64,000 nucleotides of DNA from Octopus sinensis (taxonomy: Eukaryota), in the NCBI RefSeq assembly GCF_006345805.1, contig NW_021833451.1, forward strand, positions 1-64,000. The letters are read 5' to 3'. Position 1 is the stretch's first letter. Each line of letters starts with the position of its first letter. The position numbers and the translations under genes are program-made. Below the pieces are notes generated by a model. The model ran no database searches. It was not told where the DNA came from and worked only from the letters and a program-made list of their open reading frames with translations. Shown piece by piece: positions 12,816 to 61,449 of the stretch.

Positions 12816-13247
12816 ATGCCGAATCATCTTTTAAAGTTAAAGATAGGCGTTCCAGTGGTTTTATTACGAAATCTTGCGCCACCTAAATTATGCAACGGAA
12901 CGAGGTTAGTTATCAAAAATTTGATGGCTAACGTAATAGAGGCGACGATATTAACAGGTAAGTATAGAGGTGAGGATGTTTATATTCCACGAATTCCGAT
13001 AATTTCTGATGAATTACCATTTAGATTTAAAAGGCTGCAATTTCCTTTGAGGATGAGTTTTGCAATGACAATAAACAAGGCCCAGGGACAGTCATTAAAG
13101 GTAGTTGGGTTATTTTTAGAGAGTGAGTGCTTTTCATATGGACAGCTGTATGTGGGATGCTCGAGGGTAGGCAGAAGAGAAAATTTATTCATATATGCCA
13201 AGGAAGGACGGACGACAAACATCGTTTATCAACAGGCGATAGAATAG
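12816..13247 (+). CDS. Helitron Pif1-family helicase, C-terminal part
   Basis: [25 protein letters not shown]...[33 protein letters not shown]. Confidence 0.92.
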
Positions 13248-22513: not shown

Positions 22514-22619
22514 CACTAAATAAAATTAAAATATTTTAACAATTAATTTAAAGAAAATAATATTTTGGTTTAAATTAACCAATTAACCAAGAATTAGAAT
22601 AGAATAGACTGCCTATCGG

Positions 22620-23405: not shown

Positions 23406-23434
23406 CTATTCTAAATTAATTTTCTAATTTTCCA

Positions 23435-25085: not shown

Positions 25086-25317
25086 ATGCCAGAACATCAA
25101 GCAAACCAATCTTGGTCGAAATATCGAATTTCTTCTAAAGTTAAGCTCCCAAGAACTTCTTTGCTTATCAAACTCACCCTTCTCCTTTTTGGAGACATTG
25201 AACCAAATCCTGGCCCCAGCAAGAAGAACCTATTACGTATCTTGCAGATCAATATCAATGGAATTGCTCAGAAGACTGCTGAACTTTATTCCTTCCTGGA
25301 GAAGCATGACGTGGACA

Positions 25318-26284
25318 TTTCAGACTAAAGATTTAACCAAGAGAATGCCTCCACATATTTATGCACTCGATATGATGAGACCTGTGGGCTGTATTATTCT
25401 CAGTGAATGATCTACTCAATCAATGCCTGGAAGAACTTTTTTAATCAACCCACACTACGATTAATTTCAAATTCTGTTGTGTGATGTAAATACTGACACA
25501 GGTAGTACAATCCTACTCTTGTTGAAGACTTTTGGTTATTCACCTCAGTTATTCAAGAATGAGTTTTCTATTACCTTTGTATATCATTACAGCTTCTTAG
25601 TTCGAAAACGGGTGAAATCTTTTTTCTATTTTACGTACCATTTCTTATGACCTGACATTGAAGAATGTCGAGTCGTTTACAATCAAATTTATAATATTCC
25701 ATAGAATAAAGTCTCGAATGAACGCGTTCACCTAGAATTAACATTTCAGACGGATTGATGAGAGTCGTCATTTTTATTTATTTGATGACAAATTCACTAT
25801 TAAGTAATTATTTTCAATGTTTCTGATTAGTCATCCATTCATTACTGAGGCACTCTTCTATTTATTTTATTGAAAAAAAGTGTTGTAATGCAATATTTAC
25901 TAAACATTTTAATTTCGCAAGATGATATTTATTATGTCGCGAGCAGCGCGCGACCGAGCGCTAGACGCAACTTTGACACCTAACAAGCCTATCATCAACA
26001 AAATATTTATTAAATTATTTAAAATTTTAACATGATTTAAAATTAAAATTGAAATAACTTAAGTTTTCCATTGAATCCCATAAAATAATTTATAAGTAGA
26101 CCTTAATAGAAAAAGTAAAATCAATGAATACTGAACGCTAATTTGGTTTAGGTTGTGAGGGGGGTAATAATTTGACAGATCTCATTGCTATTTTTTCGTT
26201 TTAATCTCTAAAATTAGGTCTTCTAATCAAAAATGAACTGTGCAGACAGGCTTGCTCCTTCAGAAGATTCTTTTTTGACATTTT
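25318..26284 (+). repeat. Direct repeat X', near-identical to 19718-20686
   Basis: Same comparison as for X. Confidence 0.95.
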
Positions 26285-26538
26285 TATAAATTATGAAGCA
26301 TTTAGATTTTTTCTCATTATTCTAAAATATCAATTATAAATTTTAAAATATTATTTTTATTTATGAAATCGGTTTTAAAGCTCATTCTGCTTTGGCATCG
26401 ATTTTAATTTTTGTTATCGAATATATTTAATCCCAAGTACAAGCATGGGTATTTGTCAATTTATAGATTTTTTGATTGATCGGATCTAGAAATTGAGTGG
26501 TCGCTCGCTGCGCTCGGTCGCTCGCTGCGCTCGCGACA
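25935..26538. mobile_element. Non-autonomous TIR element (MITE-like), TA-flanked
   Basis: TGTCGCGAGC(GC)AGCG..GCGACCGAGCGC at the left end and its reverse complement at the right end. The copy starting at 20333 is truncated at the X/A junction. Confidence 0.7.
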
Positions 26539-28260: not shown

Positions 28261-30286
28261 CAGGCCTGGCCAACCCAAATCGCATCGCGGGCCACTTTGT
28301 CCAAATGAATCCTTTCCGCGGGCCGCATATACATGTACATACTAAGGATAGATATCAAAACAACACAGATAAGATTTTATTTAGTAAAATAGCATTCAGT
28401 CCAATTATACGTATCAATGAGAAATCTGTTTTCTTTATCTTCACTTAATTTTTTCAAATCAACTTCACAATTACTAGTTGCACATCTTAATTGGTTTTCT
28501 AAGTTTTTATCTGTTAAAGAAGATCTATATCTACTTTTACTAAACTTTAATTTCGAAAAGAATGATTCACATACGTAAGTAGATCCAAAGGAGCTTACAA
28601 CTCTTTGTGCAAAAATTCTTAAGTTGGGATATTTTTCTGCAGTCACATATTTGTTATAAAAGTCAATTTGGATATAGTAGGATAAACAAGTCTTAGTTCA
28701 CTGTTGCACTGTAGGTCAATTATTTCCGTCTGCAAAGTATTTGAAACAATAGAAACGTCAACATGAAATGGAGAAGAAAATGTTTCAAACATTTTCTCAT
28801 ATTTTTTTAGTTCCGAGAATCGACTGTCAAATGCTGCAGCAAGATTTTTTATTTCATCAGCGTACTTGAAGAAATTTTACAATGGCTGATTTTAAATTGA
28901 TTAGCGTTGGAAAATGTTGATCATTTCCATTTCTTATTTGACATTCAAACAATGACAATTTCATTCGAAATGCTTTGACTTGATGGCATGCATTAGTAAT
29001 CAAATTATCCTGTCCTTGTAACTCCTTGTTTAATTGATTAATTTTTTCGGTTATATCTACCAAAAAGCACAGATCTAGCATCCATTCTTCATCATTTAAT
29101 TCAGTTAATGTCATTTTCTTATGCATCATAAAACTTTTGATTTCTTCTCTCAAGTCGAAAAAACGTTTTAAACATTTTCCGCGACTCAGCCATCTGACAT
29201 TGGAAAAATACACAAGATCACCATAGTGAGAATATAACTCGTTCAATAATTCTTTAAACTGGCGATGTTGAAGTGCATGAGAACGAATGAAGTTTATAGT
29301 TCTTACAACCACACTCATAACATGGTTCATAGACAACACTTGCGCGCACAAATTGTGTTGATGTATCAAGCAGTGTATTACAAATAAATCATTTTTTATG
29401 CTTCTTGACTCCATCTCATCCATTATTAGCTTTACAACTCCTTTATTTCTTCCAATCATAGCCGGCGCCCCATCTGTTGTCAATCCAGCAAGGGTCTCTA
29501 AATTCGCTCCATTGTCGGATAAACATTTCATAACAGCTTGGAAAATATCTTCGCCCTTTGTAGTATCTTTCAAACTGACAAGGTTAAGCATTTCTTGTTT
29601 CACTTGAAAAGATTCGGTAACTCCACGAATATATACTACAAGTTGAGACGTGTCTGATATATCCGTGCATTCGTCAAAGGCCAAAGAATAACTTTTGAAA
29701 TATTTTATTTGATCACGCAAAGTCACCACAATTTCATTTGAAATGTCATTAACCCTGCGACATATGGTTTGACGTGACAAGCTAATGTTTGAAAACTTTT
29801 TAGTTTTATCTGGCAAAATGTCTTTCACGACAGCATCCAAACACTCTTTTACGAATTCTCCATCCGAAAATGATTTCATTCTCTTTGAAATTATCATTGC
29901 AACAGAGTAGCTTGCTTTAACAGTATCAGAAGAAGAGTGTATCGATGAATTTAATAGTCTTTGCTGATTTCTCAATTCAGATTTAAGCGAATCCAGTTTC
30001 CTTGTTTTCAATTCCTTACTAAATTTCGCGTATTCGGAATGCTTTGTTTCATAATGTCTTCTTACATTGTACTCTTTCACCACCGATACTTTCTCCTTGC
30101 AAATTAAACATGTTGGCTTGGAATTATGCATTATAAAAAAGTAATCTTCTTCCCAATGATTGCTGAATTGCCTGTTTTCTTCAAAAATTTTCCTTTTCTT
30201 CATATTGATAACAGCTACAAAAATAGATAAACTTTAAAATTTATTAAACTTATAAAATTTATCTTTATTTATTAAACTTAAGAAAA
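28261..30286 (-). mobile_element. hAT (SPIN/GTF2IRD2-like) transposon, near full-length transposase, one TIR only
   Basis: ORF 28857-30203 (CLIC, RRHYETKH, KSFSDGEFVKEC, LAFDECTD, TTDGAPAMIG, HCLIH, VRWLSRG) and 28377-28646 (FGSTYVCESFFS). TIR CAGGCCTGGCCAACC at 28261 preceded by CTCTACAG. Confidence 0.93.
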
Positions 30287-30908: not shown

Positions 30909-33740
30909 TTATAAATGGATGTTTATTTTATACATGTGGTTATCCCTACAACCAATATATATAGAATTGCCCGCCCATAGGGGAGTAGAAAAGACTTGTC
31001 CCTCCAACTGAATAGCCCCAAGGACAGTCCCCGAACAAGACTCGACAGCATACACAGTGCCTCCAGTAGACGCCACCACGAACAGGCTGGTCCCGTCCTC
31101 CCTCCACCCGAGGACAGGCGAACTGACCAGAGGCACATTCAAGTGACAGACCCAGTGAAGTGTGCCATCATTGTACAGAGAGTACAAGTTGCCATCATTC
31201 GACCCCACAACCATCCCCTCTGACGTCACCAGAGGTCGTCCAAAGATGGGTCCAGTGGTGGAGTATTGCCAGGGGTGGTCTCCCAGCCGACGAATGGTCC
31301 CATCCACGCCTGCAACGAGGACATGGTTGGAGGACAGGACTGGGGATGAGAAGAGAGGACACCCCACACTAATTTTACTCACAATCCTCCCATTATTCTG
31401 AAATAAAGCACGTGACTGACTTTGTGACAGGAGTAGACGAATCCGGCGAGACAGGAAAAGTAGAGGAGGTGGGCAGTCGAGGTGGGTTGAGAGACGACAC
31501 TCCCCTCGGTTGAGTATGTCCACACACATTTGAGGTCCTGCAGGGATAGACAGTACATGTGTCTGCTGTGTGATCCAATGAAGACGAATGGCCAGTCGAC
31601 TGCGGGAGTACACTTGACAATGGACAGTGTGTCATATTTCCATTTTATTAGTCCATTCTCGATGAAATACACGAAATGGTCGTGGCAGCCAATGACCACC
31701 ACCCCACCCACACAGGCAGGGGATGCCTCCACTCGACCCCCCAACTGCACTCGCCATATTTCACTCCCACACGTGTCCACTCCAAACACCCAGCCAGAAT
31801 GTGAGCCGAACACGACCAGTCCACTAGAAATGACAGACCACGTTACTCGTCGATGACTGCTCCCCCATCCACACACTTGGCTGTGTCAAATCCCCACTCA
31901 ATGGTCATCCCCCCACTCACCACATGTCCTCTCTTACTGCACTGCCTTATCACGTCCCCCACCGAACAGGCCAGAATGGACTCGACGTGGACGACCCCCC
32001 GACCAAACATACTCTCCAGTGCCACCACAATCCTCAGAGCATCGAGGGATGTCGAGGCAAGCAATGAGGAATCAGTCACCTCTCGATTAAGCACGTTCTC
32101 ATACACCTGCCTGACTAATGTGGCCGTGTCCCCCACCAACCCACGTTTGCCTACTTTATATAGACTGACTAACAATGTGGGGACTGGGGGATGTGGCAGA
32201 CTGAGTGCACTCTGTCAGGACGGCAGTGGTTGGGGAGGGACTCGACAACCTCTCTCATGGACACCCCTTCTCTCAACACCACAAAGGCATGGAGGAGTCC
32301 CCCGATCTGGCGGAGGGCAATTCCATCACAGGACTCCCTCAGAAGACACTCCACTCCGTCCAAACACACCCGCACTCCACACCGTTTGATGACTCGGTCA
32401 GTCCTCCCCTGCACATACACCTCCCCCTCCTCCTCCACTCCCATGTCCCCACTATTGTACAACTCCCCTCCTTCCCACCCCAAATATATTCCCCCCTCCT
32501 CCATCACCAACACACGTGATGTCAAACATGCCCCCACTGGAATATCCCCACTCCAATGGCCGGGATTTCGAATATTGTGCTCCACGCTGACACTTCCGTG
32601 ATTCCGTACAAATTGAATATCCGAGTGACATTCCCGGGCTCCCTCACCACCTCCCTCACTCCCGGAGGAGGCTCCCCTCCAAACAGGAGACATTTCAAGG
32701 ACGTGTTCTTCCCCAACAGTGTTCTACTCATTTCCCGCCCTCCAATCACACGGAAATATGTCGGAGTCATCTTTTCTCTCAGCTTACTCCACTACCTGCA
32801 TTATTGACACTTTCGCCTCCAGAAGAACCGGGATTGCGGCTGAAGGTCTCATCAGGAGGTCTCTTCCTACCACCAGAGTGTGACCCCCTCCACTCAGGGC
32901 GCAGAACATGTCCACAATACTCGGGTCAAATGTGAGTGGGGCTGATAGAAGCACCACATCTCCATGTTCAATATTTAATATATTTCTATACAATGTAATA
33001 ATCAACAAACACTATTTAATGTTTATAATTACTAAACAAGTGCAAATATTAATCACTCCCCATCTTAAAAGCAACATTAATTACAACACATTATTCATCA
33101 AGGATACTAAGGACTGCCTATCAAAAAGCGCAGTAAAACACCTATCCTTGTCAGGGGGGTGACATTAAATGACTATACTAGGAGAATGTGTGCGCCTCTC
33201 TATTGACATACACAATGCCGCCATGTCATGTGGCGACTAATTTTTGAGGCCCAAGGCCGCTTACCGAAAATCAAGAATATTGGGCATAATGCAGTCGAAG
33301 GGCACCCTTATTATCTTGGGCTGTGCTGTGGAGCCTGATGTGGTGATAGCATAGGCAATGTCCGCGCTCTGTTTGGTCTGAGTGGAGTGTGGGTAGTGGA
33401 CACAGGAGATGTCAGGGAGGAGACCCAACTCTGTGAGGGCAGTGCAGTCCAATTCATTAAGGAAATATTCCTCGTGAATAAGAATAGTCATTTACAGTTG
33501 AGAACATGTCTTGTGTGATAATAAATCGAATCTCCAGACATTTTAGGACGTATTTTATATACCAGTCTGGCCAGAGTAAGTCGATGGTGACAAAGGGGGA
33601 GGTGGCCGACACTCTGTCAACACTGAGGAGTGGGGATAGCCGATATATATGGCCGGGAGGTGTATACTACGGGATATGCATACTCCTATGTATTCCCCCT
33701 CCCCCGATATTAGATTGATTGCTTTGGATATCTATTCTAT
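30909..33740 (-). CDS. AASDH: Beta-alanine-activating enzyme (ACSF4/NRPS998): adenylation, carrier and PQQ-like beta-propeller domains
   Basis: AYAITTSGSTAQPK, LTFDPSIVD, NLYGITEVSAW, YNSGD, GRTDRVIKRCGVR, STSLDAL, and PQQ repeats (GRVEASP, IGCHD, VKCTP, GPIFGRP, GQVFSTP, IGCRDNHMY). 5' end approximate. Confidence 0.9.
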
Positions 33741-38899: not shown

Positions 38900-39270
38900 T
38901 CTAACGACCTTCCCATTTGAAAATGGCAAGTCTCTCATCTGGGACGCCACTTGCACGGATACCTTCTCCGCCGGGAACATCTTGACGTCGGCTTCAGAGC
39001 CGGGCTCCGCAGCCAACCTGCCCGAAACGCTAAAAATCAAGAAATACAGTACATTATCTCACCGCCATATCTTTGCCCCGATCGCAGTGGAGACATCGGG
39101 AGTCCTCGACCCCAGAACTAAAAAATTCTTATTAACTGGGGGATTTGGCAAGCAGAAGAAGAAATGATCATCGGGAACGGACATGGCTTTTCCAACGCAT
39201 ATCAATAGCCATCTTGCGTGGGAATTGCCATTCCATCCTATCCTCTGCTGCTAATTAAATATACATATAA
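38900..39270 (+). mobile_element. CRE-like REL 3' fragment, close relative of 59145-59815
   Basis: WDATC.DTF, PGSAANL.ETLKIKKYS, APIAVETSG; near-identical to the reverse complement of 59145-59512. Confidence 0.85.
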
Positions 39271-39339: not shown

Positions 39340-40914
39340 CGTCAGGTATCACGCGGCCCATAGGTGTCACGCAAACCATGTCACATAATATAATTTCATA
39401 GTGCACGTTTCTTCGGTTTTTGTTGACTGCTTTTTTACAATGCCTAAAAACAGGAGTTCCAACACTAAGCGAATTTCTTCTATTGTTAAAAAATATCCTA
39501 AGGAGTTTTCATCTTCACTGGATGGAAAATTATTCTGCAAATTATGTAATTCTTACGTAACTACTAATAAGGAATGGTTTATTGATAAGCACAGACATTC
39601 TAAAAAGCATATTCTGAGAATCCCAGATACGAATAATACTTTGGATACTCATAGTAAAAATGAGGTTACTGCTGATTGTTTTGCCGTGGATCTTGCAAAT
39701 GCATTTTTATCAGCAAATATTCCACTTCATAAGTTACGAAATACATCGATTATTGATTTTTTAATAAATATGGACATTATGTTCCTTCGGAAACCAAATG
39801 CAGAGACATTGTTACATTTCTTGGTGAAAGGATGGTTTCACAAATTATTAACACAGTTTCAAGTGAATAAATTGTTTTAATGATTGACGAAAGTGATTTT
39901 GGAATTGTCTTGTTGGAACGTTAAAAAATCCACAAGAATATTTTTTAATTGATTGTATTGCAATTAATATAGCTCCCAATTCCGCGATTATATGTCAAAT
40001 TATTGATGACGTCATTCGCAAACTCAATGTTGATAGGAAAAATTTTTATTTACTTATTTCTGATGCTGCTTCATATATGGTTTCTTCTGGAAAAGTATTA
40101 TAGCAATTATATTCAAATCTATTCCATGTCACTTGTGTGCCGCATTTATTACATAATTGTGCCTTCAGAATAAATCACATTATCCAGAGGTAGATAAATT
40201 AATATCGTGCGTCAAAGCACTTGTTGTCAAAAATAATTCACGACGTCAATTATTTACAGAAATTGATATCCACCCGAGCCCATTGTAACTAGATTGGGCT
40301 GTTGGTTAAATGATGCTGACTATTATGCAAAAAATTTAACACAAATCATCAATATTTGTAATGGTATAGAAGAGGAATCTTTATTGATACAAAGAGCAAA
40401 GTAATCCGTTATGAATGAATTTCTTCATATGAATTTAGAAGACATAAGCCGGGAATATCATTTATTAACAGATATTTTAATGGAAATTGAATCTAATAAA
40501 TTCACTATTTCAAGAGCGTATCATTTTTTGAAAAATGTTGATTTTAAAGAAGATTCCTGCAAAATTCGAGACTATATAAGCTTACGAATTTCAAGAAACG
40601 ACATTTTCAAAATAATGGAGTTATCTAAGCTACCAATTACTCCATTTCACCACGCATTATTATTGGATTGCCCGGCAACATCGTGTGAAATAGAAAGATC
40701 ATTTTCTATTCTTCACAAAATTTTAACCAAAGATAGAAATTTCCTACCTGAAAATGTTAAATATTATTTAATGTTGTGCTTTAATAAATAAATTTCTGTT
40801 TCTTAGGGCAACTTTTTATGCATATTATGTCAACTTTTTTATTTTTTAAAGCAATTTAGTTGACTTTTAAGGTCAATTTTTTACATTTTTAAGAGCAACT
40901 TTCCGGTTGCCCTA
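39340..40914 (+). mobile_element. hAT transposon with CGGBP1-like BED finger, decayed; right TIR CCGGTTGCCCTA
   Basis: LFCKLC..KHRHSKKH, LMIDE, ISDAASYM, FHVTC, TRWG, DCPATSCEIERSFS. Left TIR not found. Confidence 0.85.
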
Positions 40915-41095
40915 CTTATAAGTTAGATTGTTCTAAAACACGCTTCGGCAAAACGCGGCCCGCCAAGAAATTTTTCCAACTAACATGGCCCGCGGGCAAA
41001 TTAATATTTATATATAAATTTTATCTATTATTAAAAATTAAATAAATTTCTAAACGTGTTATAATTCTTTGTGGTAAATTTTATATGACGCTCAA

Positions 41096-41347
41096 GTGAA
41101 AATAATTCTACTGGTTTTGACTTGGGACGGGCTCGTTTCCAAGTTTTTTAAGAATTACATTGAAATCTTGGCTATCGAAGACGGAATTCAGTCTTATATA
41201 CAGTCAATTGTGTTGAATAAAACCTTGGAGAGTATGATTGTCGAGTACAGGCACGGGATAAGAGTCACTGAAGAGGAGATAAATTCAGCCAGTAGCCTCT
41301 TAATTGAGGCAAGTCATTCGTACGAAGATGATATGTTGAATGAGTGA
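41096..41347 (+). mobile_element. R4/Dong-like REL C-terminal fragment (also near 21145-21400)
   Basis: LTWDGLVSKF..YIQSIVLNKTLESM. Confidence 0.65.
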
Positions 41348-41588
41348 AAAAGAGTCGTAACTAACTTGGAGATAGAGGAGCATGGAGATTTGTTAGTTAC
41401 TTCCTCTTCTAAAAAAAGGAGATTAACCTCCAGCGGACAACGGTCAGATTAACATAAGTTAAATAATATTAACTTAATTAATCTATGTATGTTTTAAATT
41501 TATTAAAATAATACTAAATTTAGTTAAAATATGCAAGCGTTCCATGAATTTTTTGCCCTACTGTTTTTACAGATAAAATCAAAAATAA

Positions 41589-42461
41589 TTATATAAATTT
41601 ATAAACAAAGTCTACTCTCATAAAAACAGCAGGAAATTTATTCCCCTTATTTGAACTGACTTTCTTAGCCTCCTCACTCGAATCAAAAATACAAGAATAC
41701 GCCTCATCGTTAGCCTTACAGTAAACAAATATCCACCAACCAATTCTTCTTCCCCCATCTTTCTGAATAAATGATGACTTGATAACAGATCATTCATCCA
41801 CTGGTAGAGTTCTTCGACATCCGTGATAGTATAAAGAATTCCCTACCACTAAATAACCCATATCTAACCCCCACAGCCATAAGATAGGCCAGTTCGTCCA
41901 CTGTACTAGAATTAACCAGTCTCCATTTATGCTTTGATTTTTTAAACTGAGGGTCTGGAAAGAGGATGAAAACTCGCTCCAACTAAATTAATAGATTTTT
42001 ATACCCAAAACCTGGCCTTTTGAAAAATAGTTAACTAGATATTTCATGGCATTGGTTCTTATGCAGGCAATGTTTGACAATTCTCCTTCCTCTGCTTTCT
42101 GGACCCTCAGTGCTTCTATTTTCTGTCTGACAAAATTTGAAACTTTTTTGCGTATTTCCATTCCGATTATTAATTTATCGGGAAAAATATTTGAGAGTTT
42201 AACTATTGATTATTTATAAATATATTTATTACAGAGAAGGCCTCCAAAACCACAGCCTATGTCTACTATTTTGATTGAACTGCTCTCATTACAAGGTAGA
42301 GAGAGAGAACTGTATAGTGGTCTCCAATTCCATTCTGATGGTCTTATCGGACTATTTTAAGTTAAATGGGTAAAGTACATTTCAAAGTTGTCGTCCGACA
42401 TTGGATTGCAGTGAGCCCTCTGACGGAAAAATTTTTTTTGAGGAAGTTTAACGTGGACCAT
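41589..42461 (-). CDS. METTL1: tRNA (guanine-N7)-methyltransferase catalytic subunit (Trm8/TrmB)
   Basis: [69 protein letters not shown]. 27-nt intron 42352-42378. Confidence 0.93.
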
Positions 42462-42569
42462 CACTAAATAAAATTAAAATATTTTAACAATTAATTTAAA
42501 GAAAATAATATTTTGGTTTAAATTAACCAATTAACCAAGAATTAGAATAGAATAGACTGCCTATCGGGG

Positions 42570-43355
42570 TTTGTGGAACTTAGAAGGGGAGTCCCGCAGG
42601 GTTCTATCTTGAGTCCACTTCTGTTCAACCTCTTCTTGGCGGACATTCCTCTGCCGTCGATACGTACTGGCAAGCTCGTCATCTATGCTGACGATATCCT
42701 GGTCATGGATACCTCGAAAAGGATATCGCAGTCTTGGAGACGACTTAAATCATACATTGCAACGCTAAAGATGTGAACTATAGAGAAGGGTTTGATCCTA
42801 GCACCGGAGAAGAGCACCATTTCATGGTTGCGGAGAGGGAGTCGCTATGCGGAGTCGTGTGCATATGCCATGAGTAGTTATGTGATGGATCTCTCAAAAA
42901 GCAAAAATCTTTCTTACCTGGGAGCAACCATCAACTGTCGTAGCTTGTACGCAGATCATATAGCAAATCAGAGAAAGAGGAGTGTGAGGATCCTCAAAAG
43001 CTTAACCAGGTTCCATCTAGATCCGGAAACGTACATCTACGTATACAAAACGTGTGTCCAGCCAGTCCTCACATATGGCTACGAGGGCTGGTACGGTACG
43101 GAAAGAGTGACTACCTGATCGAACAGTTGGAAAAGACAAGACGTTTCGCTATAAAATTGGCTTACGGAGTACAACTTGACGGAAGGTTAAAAGACTCACA
43201 AGAATCCTCTGTGTCCACGATCCGGATGGTCTTGGAGAATTGTTGTCAACTATGACTACAATTGGGGATACGCATGGAAAGAGACACTTCGGTGCCTTGT
43301 TTTTATCTCCCCGTTAATGATTTCTTCCTTGTTTTTCTTTTCGGTCAATAAATAT
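42570..43355 (+). mobile_element. Jockey-like LINE RT 3' fragment (copy B)
   Basis: Same motifs as 22620-23405. Confidence 0.85.
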
Positions 43356-43379
43356 TTCTAAATTAATTTTCTAATTTTC

Positions 43380-45050
43380 CAATGATCGGCTATATTTTCA
43401 AAGTAATTAAATATTCTAACAAATATTGTTCAAAAAACATGGATTGATTGAAAAAGACCTCACTGAGATAGACTTGTTCTACTCTTGCCTGTCTGAATCT
43501 TATTCTGAACTTGTTTACTCGTCAATAACTATCATTGCCTGCGACATTAACGCCAAATTGGGATTACGAAGAAGCCTGGGTAAAACCTTCATGGGAAAAC
43601 ACGGGAGGGGAATAAGGAACGTGGCAGGAATATTACTCGCCGATTTTTGTCAGGTAAATTTTGCCGATTTTTGTCGGTCTATTCTTTTGCAACACTGCAT
43701 TCATGCACCCCGCAAGACACAAAACTACTTGGATAAATGACAAAAATTGAAGACGAATTGCAGATTCCGCAGAATTAGCAGAACTAATCGCCGGCCACTT
43801 CGAGAAACTGTTTAGATTTAACAGCAAAGGAATTGATGGATATACCGAGCATCCCAGGAAATTGGAGTTGGAAATAACTCCTGCAGAAGTGCAAAGAGCA
43901 TGTGCTAAACTCAAAAACAATAAAAGCCCAGGACCAGACGGACTAGGACCAGAGCTACTCAAGTATGGAAGTGAAAAACTAAATGTCCTCATTGCGGACC
44001 TCTTCGACGGAATGTTTAAAACAAACAACCATTTACCTCTTGGACAAGGGATACTGGTCTCTGTCCAAAAACCAAACAAAGCTAAGGGAAAAGTGGAGAA
44101 TCTGAGGCCAGTAATTCTTATGAATAGCATACGGAAAGTTCTTGCAATCATTACGCTAGAAAGAATAAAACCTCGCACCGAACTATTTATATCCGCTTTC
44201 ACAGCGGATTTCGGGAAGAAAGATCGACTTCTGACATCGTGTGGACTTATAGATGGCATTGTTCCACCATTCAAAGGTTTAAAAATGCGACATACATTCT
44301 CGGCATATATATCTCAAGAGCTTTTGACTCGATTAATCGTCAGAAATTAATGAAAGTTCTTTGCAGGATTTCTTGATGAATCTTCTATTCTGATGATCAG
44401 GGCACTCTTATCAGAAACCTATCTATCGGTCAGGGTACGAGACAAGTGCTCTAAACCATTTGAAACAACATCTGGAACACCTCAAGGGGATCCGTTATCT
44501 CCTATACTGTTTGTTATATATCTGGAAGCTGCATTGAGAGAACTAAAACCATACTATGAAAGAAAGATCAATTTGGTGGAATACGCAGATGACGTGGATT
44601 TTATTTCTTCCGACAGGGACCCTCTGGAAAGCCTACTGGAGGTGATGCTAGATAGACTTGCTGAGTGGTTCCTCAATGTAAATGTGGAAAAAACAAAATT
44701 TACTGAACTAGCAAGACAGAAGTCTAAGCTGGACAAACATTGGAGAAAAGTAAAGAAACTCGGATCTCTATTGGGTGACGAACAATACGTGATTATGCGA
44801 AAAACACATGCAAACAGTGCACTACGCAGCTTAAAGGAAAATTGGCTAAAACGCAAAGGACTCGGCACAAAAACACGGATACGACTATACAATTCATTAG
44901 TGAAGCCTATACTCTTATAACGCCGGAACTTGGGGACTTTCCGCTACAGACAATGAAAACCTAGACTCTTTCCATAGAGATCACCTCCGACGTACTCTAG
45001 CCTTTAAGTGGCATTCAAGGCTGAGTAGCAGAACACTATATGCCAGAACA
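43380..45050 (+). mobile_element. RTE-like LINE (copy B, less frameshifted)
   Basis: KSPGPDG, ENLRPVILMNS, GTPQGDPLSP, EYADD, KLGSLL, IRLYNSLVKPILLY. Confidence 0.9.
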
Positions 45051-45074
45051 TCAAGCAAACCAATCTTGGTCGAA

Positions 45075-48074
45075 ATTATCGAATTTCTTCTAAAGTTAAG
45101 CTCCCAAGAACTTCTTTGCTTATCAAACTCACCCTTCTCCTTTTTGGAGACATTGAACTAAATCCTGGCCCCAGCAAGAAGAACCTATTACGTATCTTGC
45201 AGATCAATATCAATGGAATTGCTCAGAAGACTGCTGAACTTTATTCCTTCCTGGAGAAGCATGACGTGGACATTGCTTTGGTGCAAGAAACGAAGCTCTC
45301 GACCAAAATCGCTTGCCAGATTTTCCTGGTTATTCATACATCCGTCGGGACAGACCGGGCTCTGTATTGGCAACGATCAAGTGATTGAAATGACAGCTAT
45401 GACTGTCTCTACAGGATCATCAACCAGAAGACTCACCAATTTATACATACCTCCTCACTTGTCATGTCCTCATGGATGGACCCCTTCTATTCAAAACCTC
45501 CAGTCCCTCAACAAAGTCATTATTTATGTTGATATGAACGCAAAGAGCCCGATATGGTTAAAAATCAATCTCTAAACTCAAGAGGATCTCTACTATTCGA
45601 CCAATTTGATAGTTTAGCCATCCTCAGCAATCCTCCATCTCACATCAGAACACTGTCAAGAAAAAGCGACGCAATTTCCTTTTCTGACATCTCGTTGTGC
45701 ACTCCAATTTTGGCCCCTTTACTTCTTGGAAGGTCATTTACGACCTAAATTCTGACCACAACTTGATTATTATTGAGAATGCCCTAAAATCCAACATCGA
45801 CATTCAACGGCGTTGTTATACGAATAACAAAAGAGCTTCCTGGGACGACTACCGTCTCGTTCTAGAAAAATCATTGAATGATTCCGACATTATCAACTTT
45901 CATTCGACTGCCGCAGCAGTCAATTATCTCAATGCACTTATCATCTCCACCTTCAAAAAATTCATTCCTCAAGGAATTATACAAAATTTCTCCCAAAGTT
46001 ACAGCCACTAAGTAAACGCCATTATAAAGACCCGTAACAAACTGAAACGGGAAAATGGACAATCTGGTGTGTCCTTTATAGAACTGAGAAATCTAAACAA
46101 ACAAATCACTGTTGCCATAAATCGGCATATTAACTCGAAGTGGAATCAATTTATTGCTTCTATTGATTACAGATCCAATTCTCCAAATTTGGTCAACCCT
46201 TAAAGGGATGAATCAACTGATGTTTGAAAAGCCAAAATCGCATGAATCTGTTGTTTATCGTCCCCGTTCAATGCGCCACTCAATCCGGTTCAGCAGGCTA
46301 ACACACTAATGAAATATTACACTTCATTAAGTCACAAAACATCTAACAAAAACGACCGGAAAGTAACCAAATCTCTTAGAAGACTTCCCGTCAAAGATTC
46401 TATACCGACTTTCACTGCGGAGGATGTCTCGCAATGCATTAAAAACTCCAAAATTCCCCTGCAAATCGCCCTGACAACATTTCAATCTATCATCTCAAAA
46501 GACTAGGCCCTAATGCTATCAAAGCAATAGTCTCTATTTTAATCCCTTCCCAAACATTTTCCAACGTCCCATAGTCAACATGGTTTTAAGCCACTGCACT
46601 CAACAACTACTCACTTAACAACACTTTCGCAATCTGTCCTGGACGGCTTCAATGAGAAGAGACCCCCAAAACGAACAGTACTAGTTTCAATCGATGTCTC
46701 AAAGGCGTTTGACAGCGTCCCTCGGTGTGGACTCATCCACAAAATTTTAAAAACAGACCTAAACTCAAACCTCAAATCCTGGCTTGCAAACTTCTTATCG
46801 GGTCGAATGGGATACGTCTCCCTTATGGACCACTGTTCAAAACAACGCTATCTTTCAAATGGGGTACCGAAGGGTTCTGTGTTGTCCCCTCCCTGTTCAA
46901 CTTATATTTACATGACTTTCCGGCTAATGCCCCAAACAACTTGACATTATCTTACGCAGATGACATTATCATTGCTTCTAAACACGCAGATTACATATCA
47001 GCCTCTCTCAACATCCAGCAACAATTATACTCTGTTGAGAATTGGTTCATTGAAAACAGACTCGAGGCTTCACCCTCGAAATTGTCGGTCACCTTATTTT
47101 CTTCCGACAGAAGATAATCAAACCTTCACCCGAAGTTATCTCTCTTTGGTTTTGACCTCCCACTATGCAAAAACCCTACTATCCTCGGACTTACTTTTGA
47201 TCCAACTATGTCCTTCAACAAGCATGTCTCTAACATTTCTGACAAGGCAAACAGACGCACAAACATACTAAAAGCAATAATTGGTCACATTACAGGCGCC
47301 CAGAAGTCACTTCTCAAACGAGTTTACAAACAATACATTACAGGCCCCCAGAAGCCCGTATTAGGTTATGCGAGTCCAAGCTGGGCGCCCTGTCTATTCA
47401 TAAACTCGACAATGGCACTTCAATCAGTACAAAACAAGGCCATGCGCACAATATCTGGGTGTCTGAAATTAACCCAAATTGATAACCTTCACTGTGAAAC
47501 GAACCTTTCGCCAATTGAAGATCATCTAAACATGAGAGGAGCGCAATTTTTATTTGCATCTCGAATTCCCTATCATCCATTTTCTGCTCTAAATGTGCTA
47601 AACGGAAGAACACGGCGGCGAATCTATATTCCCGGATCCTTGCAAAAATCGACGGCTTGCACCAATTTCCATACCCGATGAGGAAAATTCACAATTTGAT
47701 ATCCACATCAGCTATTCTTAACTGACGCCCAACTCTGTACTCAATAAACCTCCTCCTGACGTTCACTATTCTGAATTGCTTCTCGACCGTTCAGCTCAGA
47801 CAAACTTGACTCGTTTCCGTTCTGGTCATCACTCCTCATTAAACCACTATGAACACAAAATGGACATCTCGATCTTCCCCTTTTGTCCCATTTACCATGC
47901 TGACGAGCACACAACTGCGTATCTATTCCGCTTCCTGGTCTTCCTTCGCTCCGTAAAAAATTTGCCATTCACTCCCCGGAGGTCCTATGGAAGCAACCTG
48001 GGAGGGCAGTGTTGTTTCTGCAAGCTGCTGGTCTCATAACTTAATGTGAAATCGGGTTTATGCAACAACAACAA
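45075..48074 (+). mobile_element. Jockey/I-group LINE with N-terminal 2A-like motif, APE, RT, C-terminal Cys/His motif and (CAA)n tail
   Basis: GDIELNPGP, LQINING, LVQETKL, DMNAKS, SDH, IDVSKAFDSV, SYADD, CP....HTT.YLF; ends CAACAACAACAA. Confidence 0.88.
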
Positions 48075-48625: not shown

Positions 48626-48876
48626 ATATGGCGACGAGGACTGGTTCGGTACTTTAAATAATTATAATTAGGGTTAGCATGGAAAAAGACGCTTCGGTGC
48701 CTTGTTTTTATCTCTCCGTTAATGATCTTTCCTTTATTTTATTGGTTATGGTTTTTCCTGAACAATAAAAAACTATTCTATTCTATCTTCAAAAAGGAGA
48801 TAGTTTGAATTTGAATCATTTTTGTCGAGAAGTGAAGAACAAGGTCTCTACACGGTTAGATTTTAACGGTAATATA

Positions 48877-49625
48877 TTATTCTCCACATAAACCAATAAA
48901 TATATTAGCAGTGATATCAGCAGAGGAGAGCCTGAAATAAACATCATGAATGAGACACTCATCTCGGCACTGTTCAATAATATGTCTGTAATCCCAAGTG
49001 GTATTTGTCTCCAACGGCTCCTTGGTTATAAACCCAAAGGCGTAGATATCCAGTCGATAGTTTATACTCCCTTCCACAACTCGGGCGCCATGTATGCAGA
49101 GGATCCTACTTTTGAATGACAAAGACTCCTGAGGTAGCTTGAAGCAATGGGCAAATTCAAAGTAACAGAGGACGACATTCTTGCAGTCATCTGAGACCAG
49201 AAAGTTGTCAGGTTTTATGTCTTTGAACAATCGAACGCGAATGAATATAAGCCACATAAGTTGCGGCACATGCCATCAACCAAACCAAGTTTCCAGGATT
49301 TGAATTTTTTTCTACGAATAAAATCAAGTTTGCTACATTATGTATGTGCCAGGACAGTGATGCTTGGAGATTATGTGAAACCAACACAGCCTACGCAGTG
49401 TTGCCGATGGTCCTTTGAAATGGCAAGGTACCCAAATATTGTTAAATCATTGTGAAATAAGTCGCTGTTCGCGTATCTTATAATAGCTACGTCATGATTG
49501 CCAAATTTCTCATGCAAAATTCCACTTTCATTTAATAGGTACTGTGGCGTAAATATATATGATAACACTTTCATCAAATCAAACACAGCAAAACAAACTA
49601 CGGACTCTTTCACTACGCTTTTCAC
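48877..49625 (-). pseudogene. Degenerate protein kinase
   Basis: RYANSDLF, DIKPDNFLV, degenerate DFG (CYFEFA), DIYAFG; frame breaks. Confidence 0.6.
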
Positions 49626-49647
49626 ATTTGAATTGGGAAGCAGCGTG

Positions 49648-49965
49648 TTTGGGACGTCACCTGTGCCGACTCTTTTGCCAAGGGAGCCTTGAATTCCACT
49701 GCTTGTTGACCGGTTCGTCGGCCGAGGAGGTCTAATCCACGAAACTCACGAAATACAAGGATTTGTGCGATCGCCTTTGCTTTTTGGCAATTCACGTTTA
49801 GACTTCACTGTGTTTTCGGGGCCAAGACGCTTACTCATCAAAAGAAACTTGGCCGTCTGTGCACCCATCGCTCCAGAGATCCCAGGGAATTTATATTCCT
49901 TATTCAGAGAATCAAGTTGGCTGTTTTACGCGTGAAATGTCTCTCAATCCTGCGAGCCGGTACTT
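49648..49965 (+). mobile_element. CRE-like REL 3' fragment, old
   Basis: WDVTCADSF, TKYKDL, FLIQRIKLAVLR. Confidence 0.7.
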
Positions 49966-50085
49966 AATAACTAGCTTATTCCGTTTTCCATTTAGTTATA
50001 AATGTTTAAAAAAATGTGTTTAACACAAAATTAATGTAATATATATAAATTATTTTTATTATAAAAATTAATTCGTAAAATAGCA

Positions 50086-52904
50086 TTAATAATTTAAATC
50101 GTTGCTTAGCTCGCTCATTTGAATAAACATTTGTTCGAACAGTTCATTTAAATAATGTCCACTGACACTGAGTTTGAGGTCTTTAATCATCTACCACTGA
50201 CTTTTATTATTACTTGGTCTATTTTCAACTTTGTATCTTCTAAAACTGCCTTGTCTGTTTGATCTGCAGAATGCAGTATGGTTGCAATTTTTTCCCAAAC
50301 TTCCTCTGTATTCTCAGACTATGGCAAAAAGAATACCTTAATTGGGGAGAGCGACTCCACTTGTCCTGATAAACAGCATACAGTCGTTAGATATAATTCA
50401 ATGTTGCTAATAATAAAAGATGTTTTCTACAATTAACACAACTAGTTACTTCTCGGCCAAATTTTAAAATATTAGAAAGATTTGATAAATTTAATGCAAG
50501 CTTGGAGCCAACAGACCGTGTATATTTGAAGATAAAACTCTCTGGGTTATAATAATACTTGAATACTAATCAAAATAATACATTAATTGCTGCATTCAGT
50601 TTGTAATAGTCGTCGGATAGATTATGGACATAGTGTTCCAATTGGCTTTGTATTAACGTGTAATAGAGCGTTTTCCCCAAAGCCTTTTAATTATAATCAC
50701 AAGAATACTTTTCCCGCCGAAATCAGTCTTTTTGTGTTCACGGAGCACGTGTTTAATATATTTTTCACGTTTACAGTCAAATTGTTTGATAGAGTTGACA
50801 AAAATTCGAATGCTTGGTCTGAAATTTCTTGTATGTGAGCATTCACATTATTCTAGAGCATGTTTTATTCAACTGACCTGAATTTCCCCCATTGATTGCA
50901 CTCTGTCAGGTAGTGCAAGCATGACTATCACGGTGTCAAGAGTATCTCCAATATCCGCCACGGATTCTGCCAGTCGACTGTCCCTCTTGTGGATACAGTC
51001 AGTGTAAACGAAGAATTCTGTCACACGTCTCTTCAAATCTTGCCAGAGCTGCTCAATTTGCTCATTATTTCCTTTCATTGAGTCAAGGAGCTGATAGAGC
51101 CGGTTCAAGAATATAACTCTAAACATGAGAGAGAGAACTGTACATTCCATCAACCAGAACACATCCCCCTCCCGTAGATTCCTCGACCACTAGTCCTTCC
51201 AATCGAATGAAAGAAGAGAGCAAAAAGAACACGAGTGCAACTCCACACTTCCTAATTTTTGACTGGTTCATGTTTGTTGAGAAATGAAATTTTTTTTCAA
51301 ACAGGTTCCCGCTCTTTTTATAAATCGATTGTTAATTGATTCATTTTTTTCAAAAATTGTCCGCATCTTGGCGACATGGCGATGTTCCTCCCCAAAAAAC
51401 GAATTGCAAGATTCTCTGAACGTCGAGTCTGATTCGACGGAAGTCTTAGAAACCCTCACGTTATCGTAAAAATCTTTGATCGATCCATTCTGAGTTGGCA
51501 CAGTATTCCCCAAAGATTGCTGAAGAGAGGAGACAGAATTGAAGATTTTGTAATGTAAATGAGAGTAGTGTCGCAAGAGGAATGAATTCAATTGTCAATT
51601 TCAGTAGTTAAAATGTTGTATTTGGAAGTAAAGTTACGCCCAAAATCGAAAATGAATCGTCCTTTGCCGTATCCCCATTTTTCAACGTTCCCTACCGGCC
51701 AGGCGTGCTTTAAACTTCTTGATTTGACTTTATAAATCAAAATATATTTGGGGGAAATTGAGAGAATGCGAGGAATCAACTTTCCATGTTTCAAATTAAT
51801 TTCCTTAAGTTCACCAATTTGGCCAAACTTGAATGTAAAAAAATGTAGCTCCGAAAAAGGGTTTCCCACAGCATTCTTTTACATAGTCCGACTTGATGAC
51901 ATCTCCAACTGATCCTCGGAACAGTTTGTATTGCTGTAAATAAAAATGCACCAAATTCAACCTCAGCCACTTTACGTTCAATCTTTCTATTTCTTTGATA
52001 TATTTCGGGCAAGTAGTTCTGGAAGCTGCATATGTTAGAAATGAGTCACCACTTTATCGACTTGGCAGAGAAATCACCTACTTCAATTTGGCATTGCATG
52101 GCTGCTAATTTTATGGCCGGTCCAGTATCGATTTGGCAAGTTCCTGAGAGAATTAGTCCAGAAAGCTTAAATAAAAGCAAATAACTACATGTTGGTAGAG
52201 AATATCTAATTCAATGTAATTTCTTGGAATATTCTCGCTTATGTAAAGTCTTCTTTCCAATGTGATGATTTCGTTGGGAGAAATTCCTTGCTCGGGTAAA
52301 CTCAGCCCATTTAGTAGCCAAACCACTGAAATATACGTAAATATTATGCCATTATTGTCAATATGTAATTGGGATATAATTCGGTTAATTTTTTTATTGT
52401 GGTATGTCGGACTAGTTATCGCGGTTTCTCTCCTAAGATAATACTCTTTCCAAACGTGAATTCCTATGAATTAATGACCATCATCAACCGTATAGTTTGC
52501 AAAATATAGGAATTAAATCTCCTACCAGGCGAGAACAATTATATTTGACTGTCCTCAGGATCCCGGTCGATAACTTTATTTTTGCATATTGATGGTTGCA
52601 TTTATATTCAAGGTATTCCTATTCTTTTAATTATTTTATAAACTGTTGGTTTAGTTTGAATATAGTATCCAATCGGTTTATCATTCACCAACCAAATTTC
52701 CTTGTTGAGATCACTGGTCTTCATCATAAGGCTATAGTCTTCTAATTGTTAAAATTGAGACATGCCTTCGTCGAGGACTCTCAATTTTCGCACACTTGCT
52801 CGAAGAATTGCTATTACTTGACGGACTGGCATTTTTAAGTCGACATTGATTCTCTCAACCGAGGCAATTTCGTGAGCAATTACCTTAATCGAAATAACAG
52901 GCAT
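50086..52904 (-). CDS. TLN: Talin-like protein: F0-F3 FERM head plus short helical tail
   Basis: F0 MPVISIKV..DYSL..IWL..K.IGYY; F1 KIKLSTG.LRT; F2 MQCQIE.G, YLPEIY, YVKNA; F3 KLIPRILSIS..W..NVEKW..FIFDFG..Y...TTE. Introns 18-28 nt. At least two homopolymer frameshifts. Stop at 50086-50088. Confidence 0.85.
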
Positions 52905-54149: not shown

Positions 54150-55451
54150 ATTTATTACAATAGGTCCAAAAGAAAAGTGGCCGAGGAATTAGAGCTTAGG
54201 GGGCTTGATAACGAGAGCCACGAAGGTCTCAACTTCGGTTTTGCCCCAGGAGACTGTCTTATCTCCCTCAGCGAGTTCGAGTTTTTGCCAGGATCGCGTC
54301 AATCGTGTCAACACTCCGCTCATGCAGGTCTTCCAGCGGACTGCTGAGCTCCAGGCCGAATGCCAGTTTGATGGCAAATCGTCTGGTTTTTTCGAGTTTG
54401 GCGATTAGAAGGTCCCTTTCATCAGTTTGGTACCAGCCCTCCGAGCCATAGATTATTAGTGGCTGAACACAAGTCTGGTAGATGTGTAGAAACGTTTCTG
54501 CGCTTAGACAAAAACGCCTCAGTCCTTTTAGGATTTTCGCTCCTTGTTTCCGCTTTGCATGCACATGGGGTTTGTATGACCCGGTGGGGTCTATAGTTAC
54601 TCCCAGGTAACGTAGGTTCTTCGATATAATCAGGTTCCCATAATCCTCGAAAGTCGGTTTTTTGTCACGACCCATTGAAATCCAACAAATGGTACTTTTG
54701 TCCAGGGCAAGATTCAAGCCTTTACCATTGCACCAGATTTCAAGTTCCTCCAAGTACGGTTCTAGTCTGCTCCAGGACAGCCTTCTTCTGTGTCGGGGTC
54801 CCCACATCGAGACATCCGTAACCAAGATATCGTCTGCGTAGATAATTAGTCTGCTCGTAGGAAAATGTGGTTTCGGGACGTCGGCCAGAAATATATTAAA
54901 GGCAAGGGGCTGAGAACCGATCCCTGAGGAACACCTCTCCTCAGATTCACGGCCTTCGATAGCAAATTTCCACAACGAATGAACGATTTTCTCTCGCACA
55001 AGAAGTCCTTAAGCCATCCGACAGTTTTTCGCCCAGCACCCAACTCCGCTACTTTATCTAACAACCCCAAGTGCCAGACACTGTCAAAGGCCTTGCAGAC
55101 GTCCAGGCAGACCGCCGTTAGGCAGGCTTTATGTTGTTTGGCCCGAGTCAGTTCTTCCTCAAGAAGCGAGAAACAGTGACCGGTTGATCGACCAGGTCTA
55201 AAACCCCACTGTTCCTCCGCGAGTATATTATTTTGTTCCACGTAAGCCGATAAACGATTGAAAATAATTCTTTCCATTATCCTCGACGTTGTGCAGATAA
55301 GGCTAATTGGCCTATAACTTCCTGCCTGCGTATTTGGTTTTCCAGGTTTTGGGATCATTCGGACGATTGTTCGTTTCCAGCTAGGTGGGACGTGACCATT
55401 GTCCCAACTGGCATTGAATAGTTTCACCAGAATACGAAGAGGCAAAAGCAT
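54150..55451 (-). mobile_element. Jockey-like LINE RT, 5'-truncated
   Basis: YRPISL, QWGFRPGRST, LDVCKAFDSVWH, GVPQGSVLSP, IYADD, RYLGV, YQTCVQP.IIYG. Confidence 0.9.
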
Positions 55452-59144: not shown

Positions 59145-59815
59145 TATGTATATTTAATTAGCAGCAGAGGATAGGATGGAATGGCAATTCCCACGCAAGA
59201 TGGCTATTTATAGGCGTTGGAAAAGCCATGTCCGTTCCCGATGATCATTTCTTCTTCTGCTTGCCAAATCCGCCAGTTTAATAAGGAATTTTTAGTTCTG
59301 GGGCCGAGGACTCCCGATGTCTCCACTTCGATCGCGGCAAAGATGTGGCGGTGAGATAATGCACTGTATTTCTTGATTTTTAGCGTTTCGGCCAGGTTGG
59401 CTGCGGAGCCCGGCTCTGAAGCCGACGACAAGATGTTCCCGGCGGAAAAGGTATCCGTGCAAGTGGCGTCCCAGATGAGAGACTTGCCATTTTCAAATGG
59501 GAAGGTCGTTAGACCATCAGGACGTTTACCATCCCCCCGAGCCAGCCCGACCGGTTCCAGCTATGAAGGGAATCCGGCAGTTTCCAGAGTCCGCTTGACT
59601 ATGTCGTTCAGAGCCGTATGTCGAGGGAAGCGTCCGGGACTTCTTTGGCACGATAACGGGTGCAATCCAAAGGGGTCAACGGTCGATCCACAGCGACACC
59701 GATGTTCCCGGCATACGTTCAGACCTAGGCGCATTGATATGTCGATCCTCAGGCAATCATCGTCCAATAAGGTTCCAATAGAACCCATTGGGATGGCGGT
59801 CAACCAAGCCCAGGA
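59145..59815 (-). mobile_element. CRE-like 3' fragment, tail-to-tail with the previous element
   Basis: CREHRCRCG, RHTALNDIVKR, WDATCTDTF, KIKKYS. Confidence 0.88.
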
Positions 59816-60251
59816 AAAATTTTAATATGATCAATTATGTTTTATTATGTATAAATGTTGGGGCATATACATTTTTGATGGAAAGCATTGAGTATCAAAT
59901 AATTGTGCGTATCAAATAATTGTGCTATAATAAGTTTAGACACAATATATTGCAAAAAATGAAAGAACAATTCTTTAAATGGGAGTCACATCCTGGAAAA
60001 TTTAAAACAATTTTGTACAGACATGGCATGAATTATCAGAGGAAACAATAGTCTTACTGTTGATTGAAAAAAAACTCGAAGTCCTACCTGACTTGCCAGA
60101 AGAGTCGGTTTAATTACAGCAATACAGGTAGGATAAATGTCGGTGTAGTTGTTTTAAATGGATAAGAAATTAAATATTTGAATAAAACTACATTGGTTCC
60201 ATAATAAAGAGTAAAAATAAGTTAAAAAAAACAGATTACAAAAATGAAAAA

Positions 60252-61346
60252 TCAATGTTCACATTCCTTAGTGAGGCAAAGTTTCGACAATAGCCCTGAA
60301 AGCTGAATTTCCGAGTCGAGTCCTACCGAAGACAGCCTAAGTTGTTGTAATCCAATCTCCTTCATAAACATGACTTGAATTGCCTCCTTCAAACCGGAAT
60401 GTATTTTGCAGACTTTAAACAACATGGATATTATGTCCTGTCCAGAATAGCCCATTTCCAGGAATTTGTAGAGAATCCGTTCAGCCTCGTCTATTCGTCC
60501 AGACACACAGGCATCCAACATTTCCTTGACCAGACTAGGTCGAGGCTCATCACAAATCTGCCATGTCATCACAACACCACCGAAAAGACGTTATCGGCTG
60601 TGACATCGGCCAGACCAATCACGGTAGACTGGAGGTTGTTGATCGCATTCCTCATATCTCCATCCGCACAAAAAACCAGAGCTCGGAGACCTTCCTGGTC
60701 GTAGCAAACCTTTTCCCTTTCTGCCACTCCTTGGACGCATTGATACACCTCATCGTCCAACATTCTGGTAAAGCGGACGATGGCACAACGTGACTGGATT
60801 GGCTCTAATTTAATAATCCTTTCACGCATGCCGATCAGTTTGCTCGAGTCGTTGCAAGCAAAGAAGAACCGAGTGTGGTGTGAGTTTATTTCCATTGTTC
60901 GGCGAAGGGCCTGTTGGGCAGAACTTGTTATACTGTCAGACTCGTCCAGGATTATCATTTTATGTAAGTTTTCTGGTAAATTTACTTTTTTCTGTGCAAA
61001 ATCCTTGATTTTGTTCCTCACAACATCAATCCCTCTAAAAATAAAATACTACAGTACCGTTCATGAGACGCGTTTAATTCAAGGACGGCTTGGCTAAACA
61101 AATCTCCCAGTAACTCCCGAGCCATGCACAAAATGCTTGTTGTCTTTCCTGTCCCCGGAGGTCCCTTTAAAAATTATTGAATATTGCGTATTACAGAAAT
61201 TATAAGGTTTGGAATATTCCCGGATTGAGCAAAATTTTGAAATGATCAATGGCTTCTTTATTACCAATTACATCCTCAAGTTTTTGAGGTCGATACTTCT
61301 CTACCCTTATTCGTAAAAATGGCACCACCAACCATGGGATTTTCAT
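60252..61346 (-). CDS. RFC2: Replication factor C subunit 2
   Basis: [80 protein letters not shown]. Introns of 27, 30, 23, 27 (GC-AG) and 23 nt. One missing T near 61235. Confidence 0.95.
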
Positions 61347-61449
61347 TTGAATTATACAATTAATTTTTTTTATAAAATTAGAACTTATTACAAACCTAAT
61401 CATCCAAAAAACTGTTGTTGAATTACCTAATTTTGAAAAAAGCAATTTA

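Follow-up and report, generated by a model that had tools for sequence, protein, structure and literature searches.

The window analysed here is the whole 64,000 nt stretch (positions 1 to 64,000, forward strand) of contig NW_021833451.1, assembly GCF_006345805.1, filed under Octopus sinensis. On its minus strand lies a talin-like gene, which runs from an ATG at 52904 to a TAA at 50088-50086; the same strand carries a kinase-like gene, an RFC2 orthologue and an ACSF4-like gene, and the window is rich in transposon sequences. The ATG matches talin Met1 and has an in-frame TAA immediately upstream. Both ends agree exactly with the span, 50086-52904, given in a preliminary description of the locus, made without database searches. 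The gene codes for a complete, but strongly divergent, talin head (380 codons), followed by a short tail without a recognisable rod: the post-head remainder is about 390-445 aa and the whole product at most about 770-825 aa, depending on which of two models (A or B, described below) is adopted, below the limit of 900 codons estimated earlier. The gene may be a natural mini-talin, although its frame is interrupted at one or two points of the assembly.

When translated in three frames, the region between 52904 and 51588 initially shows talin-like peptides spread over several frames. Even unspliced, the pieces of open reading frame (ORF) match the Pfam families FERM_f0 (4e-7), FERM_M (1e-5) and IRS-type PTB (2.5e-8), and the talin-1 head in PDB (2e-21). 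The frames are interrupted by seven micro-introns (24, 25, 25, 23, 24, 28 and 25 nt), all of them GT-AG except for one GC-AG: removal of each one restores frame and residue count relative to talin. The preliminary description had placed the coding region correctly, while missing about 14 ultra-short introns, along with the frame break at 51590-51588 and a possible second one at about 51270. The head exons are:

52766-52904, minus strand: exon 1, start of F0, from ATG 52904; followed by a 24-nt GC-AG intron (52765-52742), which holds an in-frame TAA
52644-52741, minus strand: exon 2, remaining F0; followed by a 25-nt GT-AG intron (52643-52619); LEYK/KIKL here, LEYK/KIRM in talin
52489-52618, minus strand: exon 3, where F0 ends and F1 begins; then a 25-nt intron (52488-52464)
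52189-52463, minus strand: exon 4, F1 with loop insert and F1/F2 boundary; followed by a 23-nt intron (52188-52166)
52050-52165, minus strand: exon 5, first part of F2; followed by a 24-nt intron (52049-52026)
51962-52025, minus strand: exon 6, with the basic patch of F2, YLPEIYQRNRKIERK; then a 28-nt intron (51961-51934)
51829-51933, minus strand: exon 7, where F2 ends and F3 begins; then a 25-nt intron (51828-51804)
51588-51803, minus strand: exon 8, PTB-like beta strands of F3 (KLIPRIL, EKW, FDFG, ILTTE); it meets TGA 51590-51588

Residues 3-377 of the spliced 380-aa product align with residues 5-389 of the talin-2 head (E=1.5e-36), bearing out the F0-F3 talin motifs noticed in the preliminary description, and all 27 PDB matches at E<=0.001 are to talin-1 or talin-2. 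Each of the three Pfam families exceeds its curated cut-off. FERM_f0 (31.3 bits, cut-off 26.9) covers residues 4-85, placing F0 at the extreme N-terminus, before F1; F1 is colinear with talin-2 and includes a loop region of about 35 residues; F2 is matched by FERM_M (2e-10 in the spliced model) and features no PH insert; F3 is matched by IRS (29.3 bits, cut-off 22), its C-terminal helix being out of frame in the assembly. Within exon 4, GIHVWKEYYLRRE lines up with talin GITNYEEYSLIQE.

The product is like canonical talin (TLN1/TLN2, Drosophila rhea), the only family matched in PDB, in having a colinear F0-F1(loop)-F2-F3 head from Met1, and shares with it a series of motifs: LPEQG for LREQG, QCQI, LP..Y, KL.PR.L, KW for RW, FDFG for LDFG, and TTE. 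It differs from canonical talin in size (about 770-825 aa, as compared to about 2500) and in everything located past the head: R1-R13, vinculin sites, IBS2, I/LWEQ (ABS3) and the dimerisation helix are undetected. Kindlins (FERMT1-3) are also similar, being rodless integrin beta-tail adaptors of about 680 aa, with a talin-like F0-F3 FERM and an F1 loop. In kindlins, however, a PH domain is inserted in F2, while in the spliced 759-aa model of the window gene no PH family is matched and F2 is colinear with talin F2; no kindlin chain is present among the PDB matches at E<=0.001.

Past the head, from 51117, the frame is open for 1031 nt (about 295 codons, 51117-50089), down to TAA 50088-50086, and includes six GT-AG introns of 25, 25, 24, 23, 24 and 23 nt. 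Under the same rules, an open path of at least 1000 nt is found in only 0.75% of gene-region shuffles (p ~0.0075), and the longest open path on the antisense strand is 852 nt. The features of this part of the gene are:

50878-51116, minus strand: first tail exon, about 80 aa, three predicted helices; followed by a 25-nt intron (50877-50853)
50852-50709, 50683-50582, 50557-50450, 50426-50337, 50312-50214 and 50190-50086, minus strand: six later tail exons, separated by GT-AG introns of 25, 24, 23, 24 and 23 nt
50055-50060, minus strand: AATAAA, likely polyadenylation signal, 26 nt 3' of the stop

These codons correspond to the "modest helical region" of the preliminary description. Proline and glycine are scarce in the tail (4%), and AlphaFold2 predictions, run on two single exons, return helices at low confidence: the first tail exon, modelled as three helices, has a pLDDT of 57. 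The DNA 3' of the stop is AT-rich, as had been noticed, and contains the AATAAA at 50060-50055.

No trace of the canonical rod was found. In the spliced 759-aa model, Pfam matches are limited to FERM_f0, FERM_M and IRS, with no Talin_middle, VBS, IBS2 or I_LWEQ; no Pfam family is matched in the three minus-strand frames of 48700-51650; PF01608 is absent from both the product and 48700-51650, the two sequences in which I/LWEQ was screened by Pfam. The profile search for talin rod and I/LWEQ domains, suggested along with the preliminary description, is therefore negative for the product and for 48700-51650. In a tblastn comparison with the window, 120 talin fragments, made of heads and linker/R1 and devoid of a genuine I/LWEQ, match nothing outside 51600-52630, and no second copy of the talin-like model is found within the 64 kb. 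On these searches, the claim that most of the rod and the actin-binding tail are apparently missing is upheld at the level of sequence. A 13-bundle rod is excluded, because 390-445 aa are too few to hold it.

Very diverged rod bundles may, even so, be hidden in the tail. When a profile is built on linker and R1 of 20 database fragments, the tail reaches -0.1 bits, less than many shuffled tails. A likeness of the tail to talin R1, seen by eye (LSNNLTVNVKNIL... as compared to ISSNLTEMSRGVKLL...), was discarded as evidence: the profile aligns this same segment, with the same score of -0.1 bits, beaten by shuffles. Pfam matches of the tail to GIT1_C (0.13) and ApoLp-III (0.22) are not significant.

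The model could also be incomplete, with rod and I/LWEQ exons located past 50086 and reached through a long intron. Long introns are not excludable from sequence, and talin models in databases are often fragmented: among the best 120 talin-head matches in a collection of 5.8 billion proteins none exceeds 670 aa and many are fragmentary models labelled talin, so that short database "talins" are usually artefacts. At this locus, however, the stop is followed by AATAAA; the micro-intron search finds no path beyond TAA 50088-50086; the kinase-like gene, located on the same strand and with its own MGAQ... start, appears to begin about 215 nt past the stop; no Pfam talin family is found in three frames of 48700-51650 and no other talin-like tblastn match in the window; the next 10 kb consist of transposon sequences. 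Missing rod exons are, on this evidence, most improbable.

Introns of this size are not limited to the talin-like gene. The RFC2 orthologue (60200-61350, minus strand) has five micro-introns of 27, 30, 23, 27 and 23 nt, the fourth of which is GC-AG, with the same GCATG donor type as intron 1 of the talin-like gene; the ACSF4-like gene carries a 23-nt GT-AG intron. In animals, reports of introns shorter than 30 nt concern only myxobolid myxozoans and Dicyema japonicum (PMC13644364). In the genome of D. japonicum, GC amounts to 36.7% and repeats to 49%, with many long interspersed elements (LINEs) (PMC6736024); in the window, GC is about 36%, and LINE, hAT and Helitron sequences are numerous. 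The best named relatives of RFC2 are mostly lophotrochozoan (55-59% identity), with no protein from the same species. Because of micro-introns, GC, repeat content and RFC2 relatives, the gene is assigned to an animal with ultra-short introns, probably a dicyemid. In the supplements of two dicyemid genome papers, as far as they are accessible, talin, I_LWEQ and vinculin are not mentioned.

The explanation we favour, with somewhat more confidence than doubt, is that of a real coding gene, derived from talin, of which only the N-terminal part is kept, and belonging probably to a dicyemid. The head would comprise F0, an F1 that keeps the loop, an F2 free of any PH insert and an F3 of PTB-like type; it would be followed by a linker-like stretch of about 100 residues and by a helical tail of about 300-350; the one or two breaks between F3 and tail would be single-base deletions due to the assembly. 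The points that weigh against such a gene concern its frame, a damaged neighbour, and the divergence of head and tail. As it stands in the assembly, the frame is broken: the head ORF stops at TGA 51590-51588, right after ILTTEIDN and before the F3 C-terminal helix, so that the literal product is a 380-aa head devoid of that helix. An exhaustive search found no GT/GC-AG intron of 18-60 nt able to bypass this TGA. The features involved are:

51594-51597, minus strand: frame break, where the F3 frame gives way to that of the next long ORF; a base would be missing at 51596/51595
51303-51594, minus strand: putative F3 C-terminal helix and linker-like segment, in the -1 frame, open to TGA 51270-51268; low-confidence AlphaFold2 prediction
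51117-51302, minus strand: segment with two models, either a 186-nt GT-AG intron or coding in the third frame

One base added at 51596/51595 produces TTEIEQLNSFLL..., resembling talin TTEGEQI...; with the base inserted after 51596/51595 the reading is TTEIEQLNSFLLRHY..., paired with talin TTEGEQISQLIAGY... A 108-codon ORF in the -1 frame (51594-51271) opens exactly at the junction. On an F3 profile derived from 47 talin sequences, this repair raises the score from 40.6 to 45.2 bits, the best among the single-base repairs tried; the gain is modest and the 4.6 bits lend weak homology support to the frame of the F3 helix. Two other solutions were discarded. A 7-nt tandem duplication (AATTGAC/AATTGAA) at the 51590 break, leading into the +1 frame and then to a 28-nt intron, scores 41.8 bits as compared to the 45.2 of the -1 frame; a non-canonical intron of 71-80 nt, to a pyrimidine-rich acceptor at 51520, has no GT/GC donor, would remove the F3 helix and was judged unlikely. 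For the segment that follows, model A removes 51302-51117 as a 186-nt GT-AG intron, for a product of about 770 aa. Model B assumes that the A8 run (51297-51290) lacks one more base, after which it reads an ORF of 71 codons and removes a 25-nt intron (51143-51119), for about 825 aa.

The assembly is indel-prone, as indicated by two other loci of the window. The two copies of a 4.65-kb duplicate (20687-25319 and 40630-45274) are 99.3% identical and differ by 19 indels, mostly of 1 nt and located beside A/T runs, against 8 substitutions. The frame of RFC2 requires the insertion of one A near 61218 ("ccgggaAtatt", 61216-61222): once repaired, it aligns unbroken with human RFC2 (E=4e-114, 57% identity). 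Both talin breaks fit one missing base, and one of them sits in the A8 run. An assembly error is favoured because the same missing-base signature recurs and because 380, 108 and 295 codons and 13 introns are otherwise intact, in DNA with 65% A+T: the breaks are probably assembly artefacts.

The same breaks may be read as the mark of a decaying talin pseudogene, in which the frameshift at 51596 (and that at about 51295, if present) is real and translation does not proceed past residue 380, or does not occur. Besides the TGA that no GT/GC-AG micro-intron bypasses, this is suggested by the unusual divergence of the head, by the lack of an expressed or annotated counterpart in the protein collections and by the state of the neighbouring kinase-like gene, which has at least 2-3 frame shifts and lost catalytic motifs and points to real decay at this locus. 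Long neutral decay, on the other hand, would have introduced many more stops in codons and micro-introns as numerous and precise as those just counted, and 1-nt deletions do occur in the assembly, one of them in the essential RFC2. A pseudogene is therefore considered unlikely, if not negligibly so.

The literal reading of the assembly also allows for two products: a 380-aa head-only protein, ending at TGA 51588, and an unrelated helical protein starting from one of the internal ATGs that exist downstream (MRTIFEKN.., MKGNNEQ...). Yet the downstream ORF begins exactly at the stop of the head and is open for about 75 codons before its first ATG, neither intergenic space nor AATAAA separates the two parts, and the head would miss the F3 C-terminal helix, which is integral to the PTB fold. 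Two separate proteins appear very improbable.

The head of the favoured coding gene is extremely divergent. It is 24-28% identical to 33 complete talin heads, which are at least 43.6% identical among themselves; of the 102 columns near-invariant in them (at least 95% conserved), it retains 45. When the F3 exon is compared by HMMER with the full set of 1.84 billion representative proteins, only ten matches are obtained at E<=0.001: the best are ordinary talin F3 fragments, about 31% identical, and nearly all ten, as well as three of the four inspected, are talin F3 fragments. A word-indexed protein search with a 325-aa concatenation of exons gives no match, because the head has diverged too far for 5-mers to be shared with talins and the collection holds no protein of the same species. 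No close relative of the head was found in the protein collections searched; for the tail, no homologue was found in the same collections and no significant sequence match in PDB. Conservation of the short architecture cannot, for this reason, be shown.

Residues important for binding were examined on the alignment with the talin-2 head, by applying to the F3 of the window the talin-1 numbering of the literature. W359, K324, L325, P327, R328, W351, K343, D369-F370-G371, Y378 and T382-T383-E384 are kept, R358 is conservatively changed to K, and the membrane patch of F2 stays basic (RNRKIERK). K316, K318, K320, K322, S365, Y377, S379 and Q381 are replaced, and because of these replacements canonical binding to integrin and membrane is not assured. 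Binding of the head to integrin tails and membrane is plausible. By analogy with the talin head, the product would attach to acidic membrane and to the beta tail of integrin, as suggested by the retention of W359, K324, L325, R328, D369-F-G and TTE, by K in place of R358 and by the basic F2 patch; it would act as an integrin-proximal adaptor, linked to actin by the head's own actin site or by partners of the novel tail, rather than through the canonical rod, vinculin sites and ABS3. The preliminary description had proposed a reduced integrin adaptor lacking the mechanosensor. Its architectural part, a head that is kept with rod and I/LWEQ undetected, stands at the level of sequence; function and uniqueness are tentative, several contact residues being changed, and "no mechanosensor" derives from negative sequence searches.

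A step further, the gene might be the sole talin of a dicyemid, a highly simplified bilaterian parasite, cut down to a head plus a tail of about two bundles, with adhesion taking place without rod, vinculin mechanosensor, ABS3 and dimerisation; we regard this extension as doubtful. Its competitor accepts the short architecture, and overlaps with the explanation favoured above, disputing only adhesion without rod: the gene would be a fast-evolving paralogue, and a canonical talin of about 2500 aa, encoded elsewhere, would do the mechanical work. For the heads of flatworms, nematodes and corals, identity to vertebrate talin-2 amounts to 45-60%, as compared to the 24-28% of the window head, while RFC2 from the same window reaches 57% with its human counterpart: this excess divergence, relative to RFC2, makes a copy freed from constraint quite possible, even if short of probable. 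No second talin-like sequence is present in the 64-kb window, and dicyemids, in which most extracellular matrix genes are lost, possess one integrin alpha and one integrin beta gene (PMC6543705), so that the reduction of a sole talin is also plausible.

Other short talins are known. Free talin head binds and activates integrins, and head-only forms, with little or no rod, are produced by calpain or exist as insect isoforms of about 500-570 aa; annotated examples are Helicoverpa X27, D. ananassae isoform D, Glossina X3 and Anopheles X7. Such forms derive from a full-length gene, by proteolysis or alternative 3' ends, whereas the gene in the window itself ends after a short, unrelated-looking tail. 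In Drosophila, talins that have been shortened still work in part, depending on the context (Klapholz et al. 2015, PMC4386027). Engineered mini-talins and Drosophila truncations, unlike the window gene, were made in the laboratory, and in most of them the C-terminal module for actin binding and dimerisation, undetected here, is preserved.

As for the rest of the window, the kinase-like gene (about 48870-49870, minus strand) starts with MGAQTAKF.. and has DIKPDNFLV, YMAPELWKG and DIYAFGFI in separate frames. Pkinase is matched at 1.9e-9 after joining the frames; VAIK is changed to VAII, HRD is disrupted and DFG is changed to YFE. The gene is either a pseudokinase or a pseudogene, or has been damaged further by assembly indels. 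The ACSF4-like gene (30909-32700, minus strand) has 53% GC in a genome of about 35% GC, and features an AMP-binding-enzyme-like C-terminal region and a beta-propeller of ACSF4/AASDH type (PF13570, 4.7e-40); because of its 23-nt GT-AG intron, it is assigned to the same genome and not to contamination.

Repeats are abundant. The 4.65-kb duplicated segment contains a LINE and is flanked by 1-kb repeats (19718-20696 and 25318-26293), which suggests a nested or terminal-repeat element. An inverted pair of 369-nt repeats (38900-39267 and 59145-59513), 96% identical and 20 kb apart, probably represents copies of one element. A tandem array (10721-11444), located in a very AT-rich stretch, has a period of about 96 nt, with about 7-8 copies, 87-95% identical. 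The heavy transposon load (28857-30203, minus strand; 12816-13247, plus strand; 1840-3909; 43862-47681, plus strand; 54268-55451, minus strand) includes a 448-aa ORF with Spin-doc zinc finger and DUF4371 (hAT/ZBED-like), a Pif1/Helitron helicase fragment, two pogo/Tigger-like DDE/CENP-B ORFs and several non-LTR reverse-transcriptase fragments.

The locus illustrates how ultra-short introns and assembly indels may hide or distort genes. Talin is regarded as the indispensable, force-bearing link between integrin and actin, and as a mechanosensor, in animals; both its rod of about 2000 residues and the module at its C-terminus, for actin binding and dimerisation, are shared by organisms ranging from the unicellular relatives of animals to humans. 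The body of the likely source organism is made of about 30 cells, with little extracellular matrix. If the favoured explanation is true, the gene would be a naturally evolved mini-talin, comparable with the engineered ones; it would show which talin functions outlast an extreme reduction of the body plan and, were it also the sole talin, would represent a natural experiment on the minimal talin compatible with multicellular life.

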